From Hyaloraphidium curvatum SAG 235-1 (Eukaryota > Fungi > Monoblepharomycota), in contig JAIVFI010000023.1 in assembly GCA_025558095.1 (NCBI GenBank), positions 372,001 through 436,000 on the forward strand: 64,000 bases of DNA, given 5' to 3'. The position numbers and the translations under genes are program-made. Positions 34,101 through 55,839 of the stretch are shown here, piece by piece (position 1 is the first letter of the stretch; the number at the start of each line of letters is the position of its first letter). Under the pieces are notes generated by a model that searched no databases, was not told the DNA's origin, and saw only the letters and a list, made by a program, of their open reading frames with translations.

Positions 34101-37100
34101 GAGCGCGATGAAGCGGGCAACGCCACCGGGAAACACCGTCGCCCGCGAATACACGCGTGCCAGCGCGAGAAAGTATCCGCGTGCACTATGAGGAGATCGT
34201 TGGGAGTACGCTTGACGCACAGCTTTGTCGACGAGCGAGAAATTGGCCTGGTTCGCCGACAGAAGTCCCTCCAAGGCACCGATCGCAATTGAAGGGTACC
34301 TCTCGTCTGAAGCTACGAAGGAGGCGTCGACGAACTGCAGCAAAGAGTCGATGTCGAAAGGGAGGATCTGTCCGTTCACCTGGATGCCAAGGACACCGGC
34401 CAACATCTTGAGCTCATCCACGACCGAAGGCTCCATCAGCACCTTGGCAACCCGTTGCCCTGAATCCGATTCAGCAGGGAGGGGCTCCGCAGCGATGGCG
34501 CCGCGGCACAGCGCACAGAGCGCGCGGCTAGAAGCGAACTCCAATGCCTTTTTCTGCTCTTCGATCGCGGAAGAAAGTGATCCACGCTCCTTGGGATCCT
34601 TGAGAGAATCCAAGATGCCAGCGATGGTCCGCGACTGCTTGTCGCGAAAGACAAGAGAGGGGACCCCGTATCCACACCAACTCTCGACGAGCTTGAACAA
34701 TACGTGCCGAATCTCGTACGACATCATTCGCCTAACGAGCTCGGCAGCTTTGTTCGCTCGCGGATCATGCTCACGCTGCAAGACAGCGATCAGGGGGCAG
34801 CATGGTGCGATGCATGCACCACGTTACCTTCACGTTCGGAGCTGCATCCGTTCCAACGGGAGATGTTGCGTGCCGCGCTATCAGACCTTCCCGATTGGTC
34901 ACAGTTAGGGTCTCGTACAGCTTCTGTACGAAGGATGCAAAGTAGTATCGCAGCATCTGGTGATCCCATTCAGCTTGTATGGTGGGATCGACCAAGAAAC
35001 GCGCCGTTTCGACAAGGTACTGCAAGAGCCCCTGCAGCAAGAAGGCGTCGTTGCCACACTCTTCGTATCGCAGGAGCCCGATGGTACTCGCGAAGAGCTG
35101 AGCAACTTCGGCCCGCAGCCGGTCGGCTTTGCGTCCGACGATGTTGGAGCCAAGCATGCCACCAAACAGGTTGGACGCCGAGAAGCTGAAGCTCCGCCGA
35201 GGAGACGTGAGAGAGAGGGACCGCACAGATCCCATAGCGTCCAGATGAGAGGCCACGCGCGAAAGGCCCTCGTCGAGCACTGTCCGGAGCAGGGGCTGTG
35301 CCTCTTGGAAGAGGATTCCGAACACATTGGGGTGCACACTCCCGAGAGCAGTAACAGCCGCAAGACGAATGGACGGGCGTTCGGCAGCCAAAAGCGGTAG
35401 CAGCAGCTGAAAAAGCTGCCGCGGGCCATACACGACGCTCCGAGCTTGTCCCGAGTCTCGCGTAGCACGCATGTTTGGACTCGTGGCCGACGGCGACGTG
35501 CTATCGACCTGGCAGCACGCAAAAGTGATATAGCATCGCCATTGAGAGACGATCTCGTCCGTCGCAGGCAGAACGGGCAAGACTGAGACAGAAGACCGGC
35601 TCCCTGGCAAGAAATTGCGGTAGGAAGAAAAGGTAGAGGATCCCGCGGTCGTGGAAACGCCAAGCTCGGCTGCGGCGTTGATGCCGGGTTGCAGCTGCGC
35701 TATCCTGCGAGAGAAAGTCTCGAGCGTTGCTGACAGCAGCGTTGACGATGCCTTCGCAAACAGCTCCCTGGCAATGTCCGGAAAGAGCCGCAGCCACAGA
35801 GCCTGGGCCTCCGGAGCCGAACTGCAAGCAAGCGAGCACAGATCATTTGAATCTCCGGCCGAAACAACATCGTGCGCGGCCAAAATGCGACAGCTAGCTT
35901 CTCGCAAAATGTCGAAAACCCGCGAGTGACGACGCGCACTGCGAGGTGCTCCGCCTTGGGGTTCCGCACCAGGGGTCACAAATGTCGGGTTGGTCAGCTT
36001 TAGTAGTCGAACGCCGTAGCGGCGAACTCCAAAGCTCGAGCTGGACAGCAGAGAGACGCCCCACTGATCAATCTCATCCAGCGCATGATCTATGGCATCA
36101 GATGCCGAAGCTTGCTGCTGCCCAAGCTCAGCGCACCATTCCTGGGCCAGCTCGACAATGAACATGAGCAAGCCGCCAACGCCGTAGCCGCTGCTACTAG
36201 ACTCGAGCTCATCTCCGGATCGCATGATCACGAAGTCCCCAATCCGTTCGTTCGAAGTCCAGGAGAGCGCGTCGACAAAGATTCGGGCGATTCGCGCTGA
36301 CAGACACAAGGGGATGCTGGTAGGGCTTGGGGAACCCTCGCTGCCCTCCTGACCGAGCCACCATCTCCTTTCCGTTGGGTCCGACGTCCTGAGAATGCGG
36401 CGGAGTGCTTCCAGGCTGGCGCGGCGCAGGCCGTCGTCGGCATGCATCGTGTACTTTGTGAGCATTTCCAGCACCTTGGTCGACGAGAAGCTCCGGTGGA
36501 CACAACGCGGAATCCCGTCGATACACGTCCTCAGCAAATCGATCAACAAGGCCTTGTTGCGCGGCAAGTCGCGACCCGTAACCTCCGATTCCTCGGCGGA
36601 GCCTGCCGACGCGAGGGAAACCTGCGACGTGCCGCGACGAAGACTACCGGGCAGCAGACTGCTCGTGGCACTCAAGACAGCCGAAGACAGCGACTGCCTT
36701 TCCGACGTGACCGAGGCTGTGCTGCTTTGCGCCGATAGAGCAGGAGCGCTGTCACGCAGGACTCCCGCATCTCCCGTCATGAGCAGCGATCCCACGAGCT
36801 GATCCAACATCGAGAGCAGCCTTCCGAGGACGGTCGTAACCTTCTCGTAACCATCCTTGAGGTGCTGGCCGGCCTTTGCCCAGAACTGGGGCGGCAAAGC
36901 CACGTTCGCGGCCGATATGTTGTCGCGGTAGAAATCTCCCGTCATGCTCCGAGTCCGGTAACGCTCCGTGTGCTTCGGCAAAGCCGACGCGCTGTTGGTT
37001 TCCAACGTCGCCACCGAAGCCGAAGCCCGCCGCAAGAAGTCCCATTCTCCGCTCACGGATTTGCCCTGACTAGTCATGCTGACGTCCACCAACAGCGGCA

Positions 37101-53900: not shown

Positions 53901-54497
53901 CTGCGACGGGACAGCGTTTCGCGGTTGGGGAGGCTGCAGACAAGCCGCTGCGGATCCTGCTGGTCGAGGACAACGCAATCAACCAGCAGATTGCCCTCCG
54001 GATCATGAAGAAGGGCGGGTTCGCGGCCGACGTGGCCAACAACGGCCTAGAAGGGGTCAACGCCATCACAGAGAGGGTGTACGACTGCGTGCTCATGGAC
54101 GTGCAGATGCGTGAGTCCCATACCGTCACATGTCTTGTGATCATAACTCACCCTGCATTTTGCCGCACCAGCGATTCTGGACGGCTTCGAAGCCACGAAG
54201 CGGATCCGGGAGGAGATTCCGCAGGAGCGGCAGCCGACCATAATCGCGCTGACGGCAAATGCCCTCTTAAACGAGCGCGAAGCGTGCTTGCAGGCCGGGA
54301 TGGACAGCTACCTTTCAAAACCCGTCGATGCGAAGCATCTGATCGCTTCGATAAAGGCCTGCCGGCGTTTGGCGGCCGAAGCGGTCGTGGACGGTGTAGA
54401 CCAGGGCCTGGTCGCCGCGGGCGATTCCGAAACCACGCTCAATTCCGGCGTGCCTGATGAGCGGACAGCATTAATCACCCCGGAAAAGGCGGAATGA
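50962..54497 (+). CDS. Hybrid sensor histidine kinase: 7TM sensor (HisKA_7TM-like) - PAS - HisKA - HATPase - degenerate REC - REC
   Basis: Introns 51128-51185, 51491-51583, 52305-52359, 52404-52462, 52569-52625, 53343-53396 and 54111-54171 restore FLATMSHEIRTPMNGVIGM and ILDFTKIEAG; also NLLNNALKFT, DTGIGI, GGSGLGLAI, ILLVEDN and LMDVQMPILDG. Confidence 0.92.
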
Positions 54498-54619
54498 TGG
54501 CGGAAGGATGGAAAGGGAGCTAGCTCGCGCATACCAGCAATACCCGACTATGGCCTGTAGAAACTATGGCACTTAATTCTGTGTCTTGAACAAAGCTTCA
54601 GATGAAACAAAATTCAATG

Positions 54620-54758
54620 GCCCCCCGCTGCCGGGAACCGAGGCACCGTGTGCGTCAGCCGCGCCTGTAAGCCCGCCCCGAAGGGCACCCGGGCCTCGCG
54701 AGAGTTTTGTCCAGGCTGGGCTTCATGACGGGCCTCGGAACCGCGGCAACGGACGGGC
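54620..54758 (-). promoter_or_regulatory. Putative non-canonical SECIS element in the 3'UTR of the SelU-like gene
   Basis: Long hairpin with AUGAA (54726-54722) opposite UGAC (54657-54654); unpaired AAAA (54708-54705); helix CCGAGGC/GCCUCGG; apical C(UUCG)G hairpin (54686-54675). Confidence 0.72.
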
Positions 54759-54765
54759 GGGTATG

Positions 54766-55839
54766 CTACCGGTCGACATCCATGGCGTCCATCTCCATCG
54801 GCTCGCACCCGGGGCAGAAATCGTCCGCGGGCGTCACGGGCGAGGCCGGCTGCTCCGCCGCCGTCGCAGAGGACGGCGTCGGCGCCAACGAGCTGCCGGT
54901 CGCCGAGCGCGCCTTGAGTTTCTCGAGCATCTTCTGACCCTCGGCGCGCGCGTCGTCCAGGGTCTTGGGCCGCTTCACGCCGATCGGGATCGCGCCGGGG
55001 GGAAGAGCGCGGCGTGCGGGGGCCGCGGCCGCGGCGACGGCGGCGGTGCGGGCATACTCGAAGGAGAGCGAGGAAAAGTCCGTGCCGGGAGGCGCCAAAG
55101 ACTTGATGACTTCGACGACCTCTGCGGAATGGGATGCCACGTCAGCATGGGAACGGAGGAGCACCCCGCGTTCGACCCACCCTCAACAGACGCGTGGTCA
55201 CCGCTGGTCCTCTCCGGATACTCGTAGTGTATGCCCTTCATCGACACGATAAAGAGACCGCCGAGGATCCTGCGCAGGGCGCGGAGGGAGTTGAATGCGA
55301 GGCTCTGCGTGCCCCCGAGGCTGCTCCCCACCTGCCCTCCCCCGCACTGTCGCCCGCGTAGCCCTTGGATGACGCCCGGTAGTAGTTGGAGTAGATTGCC
55401 CTGCCGAGGAAGTTGGACAGGCCGACCTTGTTGAGCTTGCCGCTGAACATGGCCTTGTAGAGCGCCGTGTCCTCGTCGAGGAAGATCTCGTCCGACCTCC
55501 AGAAGGTCTCCGCGAACGCCGCAACGCCCAGCGACTCCTTGACCACGGCGGCCATGCGGACGCCGCAGGCGTGGATAGCGTCGCGGATGGAGGCCAGCTC
55601 GGACGCCTCCTCGCGGCACATCAATCAGCCTTTCAAGTGGGGACATCAGATATCAGACATATCCAGTGGTGATTCGGCGTCGCATCCGCACCTGGCCGGC
55701 GGACCAGCAGCAGCAGACACGGCTGGGAGGCCCACAGCTGCACGGCCGGAAAGGGTTCGCCGGGTTCGGGCAGCGCCCGCCGCAGCGTCGCCGCATTCAG
55801 CGCCGCCAGAGACGCGCGCGGCGGGTCGTTCGCCGGCAT
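54766..55839 (-). CDS. Peroxiredoxin-like 2A / Selenoprotein U family (AhpC-TSA-like) with UxxC; probable selenoprotein, 296 aa
   Basis: Exons 55839-55692, 55629-55332, 55269-55181 and 55121-54766 total 891 nt; reads LW..LLLLVRRPG-[TGA 55627-55625]-LMCREEASEL...IFLDED...GEGRILGGLFIV..GIHYEYPE..GDHA, matching the FAM213A/PRXL2A pattern RRPGCxxCREEA. Confidence 0.88.

Follow-up and report, generated by a model that had tools for sequence, protein, structure and literature searches.

SBP2 binds the kink-turn core of SECIS elements, and the AAA motif has to lie about one helix above this core. SECIS of types I and II are distinguished by one mini-stem, and a SECIS must lie more than about 51–111 nt from its Sec UGA (PMC3753652). 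The spacings allowed by SECISearch are 10–13 nt from NUGA to AA and 15–39 nt from AA to GA (PMC2375036). Over-long apical loops are thrown out by SECISearch3 (PMC3753652), and candidates with a Y shape have long been filtered out by SECIS finders as false hits (PMC3753652, PMC2375036, PMC1802603). Enlarged apices on an intact core are known in Ostreococcus, Chlamydomonas and Dictyostelium (DI-like), whose long-mini-stem SECIS are described as single long stems (PMC2375036). In the fungal survey of Mariotti et al., SECIS were found in 5 of 16 genes and undetected variants were suggested (bioRxiv 10.1101/314781).

Here we describe a hairpin from the early-branching fungus Hyaloraphidium curvatum that in all probability serves a SelU/PRXL2A selenoprotein gene as its SECIS. 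It lies in the window (the whole 64-kb stretch of DNA that was analysed, positions 372001–436000 of contig C23) and shares with type II SECIS (RF00031; SECISearch, PMC3753652) the presumed location in the 3′ UTR, helix I, the internal loop, the AUGA/NGA tandem G.A core, helix II, the unpaired AAA and a mini-stem after the AAA. It differs from them in a second apical hairpin, with which the apex is predicted to form a three-way junction. With the long-mini-stem elements it has the enlarged apex and the intact core in common, whereas two separate hairpins are predicted in place of their single long stem. Like the fungi studied by Mariotti et al., Hyaloraphidium is early-branching, uses Sec and has SelU among its selenoproteins; it is not one of the five species of that preprint (bioRxiv 10.1101/314781).

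The SelU gene and its in-frame UGA

The gene that precedes the hairpin has four exons and a coding sequence of 891 nt, which specifies 296 amino acids (Table 1). It corresponds to P0012 (KAI9016090.1, Hyaloraphidium curvatum), for which the public annotation begins only at the Met after the in-frame UGA. In an RNA contig (from a probable RNA run, unstranded) all three SelU introns are spliced out, including that at 55630–55691, the UGA is present in the spliced RNA without a base change, and the sequence is continuous from 55121 to 54172. With its AhpC-TSA_2 domain, its UxxC redox motif and its nearest named relatives (PRXL2A/FAM213A/selenoprotein U, for exon 2), the gene has the features that mark a SelU/PRXL2A selenoprotein. 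The database searches used individual exons or proteins already on record, and the frame of the joined model, read through the UGA, was confirmed by translation. The UxxC falls at the same position as the CxxC of Cys homologues. The UGA is retained in the orthologues L015, L019 and L020 and in three paralogues, and the N terminus encoded by exon 1 is the same in these three orthologues.

The protein shares the thioredoxin-fold AhpC-TSA_2 domain (PF13911) and the RRPG-U-xx-CREEA motif with selenoprotein U/PRXL2A (FAM213A), to which it adds a C-terminal extension of ~110 amino acids that ends in a CxxC shared by two orthologues. This CxxC reads CPGC in the window (54820–54766, minus strand) and CVDC in L019 (4720–4759) and L020 (4660–4708). 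It is followed by an acidic tail of the form M-D/E-V/I-D-R/K; the orthologous P0116 has the tail without the CxxC. Introns 2 (55331–55270) and 3 (55180–55122) are missing in L019 and L020. Intron 2 is common to the window and L015, and intron 3 to the window and the paralogue L004, which suggests that L019 and L020 have lost introns. Neither L019 nor L020 retains, in equivalent form, the stem-loop directly after the Sec UGA (55627–55570, minus strand), and a Sec redefinition element is therefore unsupported.

SelU converges with a HisKA_7TM hybrid histidine kinase gene, an arrangement that is syntenic in L019 and L020. The two stops are 268 nt apart (54498–54765), and half of this interval is taken up by the SECIS. 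The RNA contig joins SelU with the kinase transcript (kinase stop 54495–54497), so that the two transcripts apparently overlap. The site of the hairpin is transcribed without a gap, as read from this unstranded, fused contig. Because of the fusion, neither the strand nor the poly(A) site can be read from it; the 3′ arm of the hairpin presumably lies within the SelU mRNA.

Table 1 Features of the SelU gene and of the hairpin downstream (positions in the window)
Feature	Position	Strand	Evidence or remark
SelU/PRXL2A-like gene, exon 1	55692–55839	−	ATG at 55839; RRPG motif at exon end
Exon 2, AhpC-TSA_2 domain	55332–55629	−	Pfam PF13911, E = 1.9e-9
In-frame UGA (Sec, residue 51)	55625–55627	−	In RRPG-U-LMCREEA
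Exon 3	55181–55269	−	RNA contig joints
Exon 4	54766–55121	−	To TAG 54768–54766; RNA contig
Putative SECIS helix I, 5′ arm	54728–54758	−	27 predicted bp; pair probabilities mostly >0.9
Helix I, 3′ arm	54620–54649	−	Pair probabilities
Putative SECIS core, 5′ half, AUGAA	54722–54726	−	AUGA invariant in both orthologues
Putative SECIS core, 3′ half, UGAC	54654–54657	−	Tandem G.A with UGAA; UGA invariant
Helix II, 5′ strand	54712–54721	−	3 bp, 2×2 loop, 5 bp
Helix II, 3′ strand	54658–54667	−	Helix II alignment of three sequences
Unpaired apical adenines, AAAA	54705–54708	−	13 nt above core
Predicted apical hairpin A	54695–54704	−	3 bp, UCGC loop; position of type II mini-stem (helix III)
Predicted extra apical hairpin B	54671–54694	−	24 nt; 4 bp, GGGU bulge, 4 bp, UUCG loop
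U-rich stretch	54598–54619	−	Just 3′ of hairpin; partly conserved in L020

Fold and core of the hairpin

The hairpin spans 54758–54620 of the minus strand and begins at the eighth base after the TAG. Its sequence, coordinates, start relative to the stop and spacing are as given in an earlier, sequence-only reading of this DNA. The stable fold that this reading expected is also obtained (−82.3 kcal/mol, z = −3.74, with 0 of 200 shuffles as stable). Helix I, for which about 25 bp had been claimed, has 27 predicted pairs, and the UGAA/UGAC core, the 64 nt between the core halves and the unpaired As 13 nt above the core were all drawn correctly. Helix I supplies most of the stability, the core-to-core part alone being no more stable than its shuffles (z = −0.23). 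The last base of the 3′ core half is C in the window, which is not an exact KGAW, and A in both syntenic orthologues (UGAA).

Counted along the spliced RNA, 777 nt separate the Sec UGA from the AUGA downstream of it, more than the minimum of about 51–111 nt. The hairpin is the sole SECIS-like candidate in the SelU 3′ UTR. A loose scan of the two strands of the whole window for enlarged SECIS-like folds returned it together with one match at 34768, which sits inside another, unrelated gene and was rejected as a chance match. The U-rich stretch that follows the hairpin is a possible 3′-end signal.

Conservation in syntenic orthologues

Two orthologous loci, L019 and L020, are syntenic with the window; the locus of the further orthologue L015 ends before the 3′ UTR. 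Protein identity is 63% between the window and L019, 63% between L019 and L020, and 57% between the window and L020. In both L019 and L020, an AUGA, a helix II, an AAA and a UGAA are located 53–67 nt after the stop. Core conservation in orthologues, which the sequence-only reading had proposed as a check, is thus observed: the AUGA, the AAA and the UGA are invariant in the three species, with the AAA 12 nt above the core in L019 and L020. In the alignment of the three sequences, 95.8% of the cells in the 8 helix II pairs are paired; two changes are compensatory and two are one-sided. The helix II register is the best among all slid registers, although with n = 3 sequences the shuffle comparison (59 of 500) is not significant. 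The conserved core and the compensatory changes agree with the proposal of a SECIS that has an intact core and an expanded apex.

Between the window and L020, identity at four-fold sites is 41%, and over 6 kb the only non-coding blastn match is the 5′ half of the element (32 of 35 nt). L020 also has a long helix I (z = −4.4), the sequence of which is unrelated to that of the window.

These comparisons bear on a reading in which no SECIS works at this site, the UGA is a true stop and the site is a G+C-rich hairpin or a DNA palindrome between convergent genes, for example a 3′-end structure of the kinase mRNA. Such a reading would account for the good fold of the reverse strand (z = −2.7) and for the palindrome CTCGCGAG within hairpin A, and the RNA contig, being unstranded, agrees with it. 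It would not account for the strand-specific AUGA, AAA and UGA, which are invariant while the flanks diverge, nor for the conservation of the UGA across species at the catalytic position. Moreover, the window shows no enrichment of CTCGCGAG (2 occurrences versus 3.9 expected), and the SelU gene would be left without any other SECIS candidate. We consider this reading highly improbable; taken together, the readings in which the hairpin is a SECIS are very probable.

A metagenome scan returned only distant SelU genes. The more distant Sec-SelU loci have canonical SECIS, and two have long unbranched candidates: one in L017 (596–675, plus strand) with an apex of 71 nt, and one in L070 (1512–1566, plus strand) with an apex of 46 nt, both with CC instead of AA. 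Two genes of the SelU type occur in JGI sample 3300059473 (orthologous loci P0013/P0113; P0028): one is a close relative (61%), and the other, SelU-like, probably comes from another Sec-using microbial eukaryote.

A predicted fork at the apex

In the minimum free energy (MFE) structures of the window and L020 elements, the AAA is followed by hairpin A, hairpin B and the 3′ strand of helix II, in that order. This fork is both the MFE and the centroid structure of the two elements. With helix II closed, the sampled probability of a branched apex is 0.90 for the window and 0.79 for L020, and none of the 13 further SECIS examined (L019 and 12 of the genome) exceeds 0.05. Pairing probabilities are 0.7–0.97 in hairpin B and about 0.6 in hairpin A, which is identical in the two carriers and, being invariant there, shows no covariation. 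On this modelling the window apex is probably best represented as Y-shaped, with a three-way junction, and the same fork is predicted in two distant species. Taking out hairpin B leaves 40 nt of apex, the size of a canonical type II element, with hairpin A as its mini-stem.

The expanded apex of the sequence-only reading is supported, whereas its single apical stem and its drawing of CUCUCGCG as unpaired are not, the MFE fold and L020 both giving two hairpins. The C(UUCG)G cap to which it had drawn attention is no distinguishing feature: it is absent in L020, which has UUGC, and a UUCG cap is also found on the canonical SPS SECIS of the genome.

Hairpin B of L020 is 14 nt long and begins 11 nt after the AAA. 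It has three foot base pairs in common with that of the window, and its top is rebuilt. Outside this top the two elements are about 90% identical, loop UCGC and junction bases included. L019 lacks hairpin B and is unbranched, with one 6-bp mini-stem, a large loop and 47 nt between the core halves. In the SelU tree the three species (window, L019 and L020) are not resolved, and the two carriers of the fork are the most distant pair, so that gain of hairpin B in two lines and its loss in L019 both fit.

The fork has to be weighed against a functional SECIS in which the apex, as in the earlier drawing, is a single long and irregular mini-stem with a large unpaired stretch above it. The element would then be extreme among type II SECIS of the long-mini-stem kind already known. 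Hairpin A is no longer than 3 bp, with probabilities of 0.55–0.63, and unbranched folds of the apex lie within 1–2 kcal/mol of the fork. Long unbranched apices occur in L019 (47 nt), in L032 (49 nt) and in the L017 candidate (71 nt), and long mini-stems have been published for Ostreococcus, Chlamydomonas and Dictyostelium (PMC2375036). Nevertheless, MFE and centroid agree on the fork in both carriers, and the closed 14-nt hairpin B of L020 follows the AAA after 11 nt that are identical in the window. We hold a single mini-stem to be unlikely.

A 24-nt micro-intron at 54688–54665 (GT...AG) was also considered, the removal of which would leave a canonical type II SECIS. The stretch has GT and CTTACAG at its ends, and its removal does give a canonical type II fold, but the RNA contig is unbroken there, all seven neighbouring introns (53–119 nt) are spliced, and the L020 apex has no GT. 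Since the RNA contig shows no splicing within the apex, we rejected the micro-intron; RNA contigs can hide minor spliced forms, and the chance that it is real seems very slim indeed.

The degree of conservation raises a further alternative, namely a functional SECIS in which hairpin A and the junction together constitute a module of their own, either a protein-binding site or a tertiary fold, by which Sec insertion or the stability of the mRNA is tuned specifically in this SelU paralogue. The identity of about 90% outside the top of hairpin B would be in keeping with this at a protein identity of only 57%, the loop UCGC and the junction bases are conserved beyond the needs of base pairing, and the arrangement is unique among the four SelU paralogues. 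Helix II, however, is as invariant as the junction between the window and L020, and slow change of the whole element would suffice as an explanation; L019, in addition, does without the module. We regard it as a doubtful proposition.

Sec machinery and SECIS elements of the genome

The genome searched was the H. curvatum assembly of 31.9 Mb in 55 contigs. It contains a tRNA-Sec (78 bits), a Sec-containing SPS gene and an L7Ae-domain gene that, by comparison with human SBP2, we take to be SBP2-like. There are at least 13 selenoprotein genes, the window SelU included. The 12 other UGA-containing genes found comprise three SelU, two PRXL2C/AhpC-like, one DI-like, one SelK, two SelW-like, one SelH, the SPS gene and an animal-type thioredoxin reductase that ends in GCUG (loci L004, L035, L036, L005, L032, L006, L007, L008, L039, L009, L011 and L026, on contigs C20, C27, C43, C30, C29, C3, C41, C22, C2 and C15). 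SelK and SelW-like lie outside the seven families of the fungal preprint (bioRxiv 10.1101/314781). Cys forms are present for MsrA, for the GPx genes inspected and for one Rdx gene.

A recognisable SECIS is present in all 13 Sec genes examined, and only one is branched. The 12 others are unbranched, with 32–49 nt between the core halves, 12–13 nt from NUGA to AA and 20–36 nt from AA to GA, and all are inside the published limits. L019 and the paralogous elements L032 and L036 fit the long-mini-stem kind (PMC2375036). Helix I is much extended (20–30 bp) in several SECIS (L005, L008, L009, L004 and the window hairpin at 54758–54620), and the long lower stem is therefore a genome-wide habit. Since only the SelU gene of the window is branched and the more distant loci are not, the fork is particular to one gene and one lineage. 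The earlier suggestion of an undescribed fungal SECIS class finds no support in these data, the 12 other genes being unbranched and within limits and one of the two orthologues being unbranched as well.

Search models and published limits

The distances from NUGA to AA and from AA to GA are 14 and 50 nt in the window, 13 and 40 nt in L020, and 13 and 34 nt in L019. The window and L020 elements thus lie outside the limits for type II SECIS (10–13 and 15–39 nt), L020 by its AA-to-GA distance. As modelled, both would be excluded by the published SECISearch limits together with the Y-shape filter. The Rfam SECIS_1 model (RF00031) gives no match at E ≤ 10 for the window, L020 or L019, and Rfam scans of the element return no relevant family. 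The prediction that searches would miss this element is in line with the missing SECIS_1 match and the broken SECISearch limits. The Rfam genome search recovered 5 of the 13 SECIS and also missed 7 unbranched ones, so that this search is insensitive and missing SECIS can also reflect weak models.

A model built from four canonical SECIS (R1) matched only its own inputs in the genome. A model of the branched form (R2) found no second copy there and did not recover L019; the covariance-model scan for further copies proposed in the sequence-only reading thus came back empty. Loose pattern matching across the whole genome was unselective, with about 3000 matches. No description of a branched SECIS was found in the literature searched, the coverage of which is incomplete.

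Discussion

With a probability of roughly 0.6, we favour a functional type II SECIS to which hairpin B has been added as a tolerated or stabilising side arm, working through the ordinary recoding mechanism. In this model, SBP2 would bind the tandem G.A kink-turn core of the SelU SECIS, helix II would keep the unpaired AAA near its usual distance (13 nt versus 11–12 nt in others), and eEFSec/Sec-tRNA would read the UGA 777 nt upstream as selenocysteine. In vivo, hairpin B would follow the mini-stem (hairpin A) and precede the 3′ strand of helix II, turning the apex into a three-way junction. The RNA beyond the AAA would be free to grow, and the side arm would call for no new recoding mechanism. 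Ordinary recoding with an added side arm is favoured because the kink-turn core and the AAA spacing are kept. Against it stand the sequence conservation of the junction, which is higher than a merely tolerated arm needs, the presence of the fork in two sequences only, the window and L020, and not in L019, the NUGA-to-AA distance of 14 nt, which exceeds the published maximum by one, and the departure of the 3′ core from KGAW.

The window element would work like a type II SECIS but lies outside the published limits, and we therefore class it as a variant eukaryotic SECIS. A much wider reading, which we put forward only as a long shot, is that the fork is a third eukaryotic SECIS architecture with a selected, functional junction, and that related branched elements, lost to the Y-shape filter, explain why some selenoprotein genes of fungi and other lineages seem to have no SECIS. 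If a Y-shaped SECIS is natural and conserved, the Y-shape filter throws away true elements. The apices of 47, 53 and 64 nt on a single gene form a natural size series with which to gauge the length of RNA past the AAA that the complex of SBP2, eEFSec and the ribosome can accommodate. The element may also give a concrete starting point for explaining why SECIS went undetected in most fungal selenoprotein genes.
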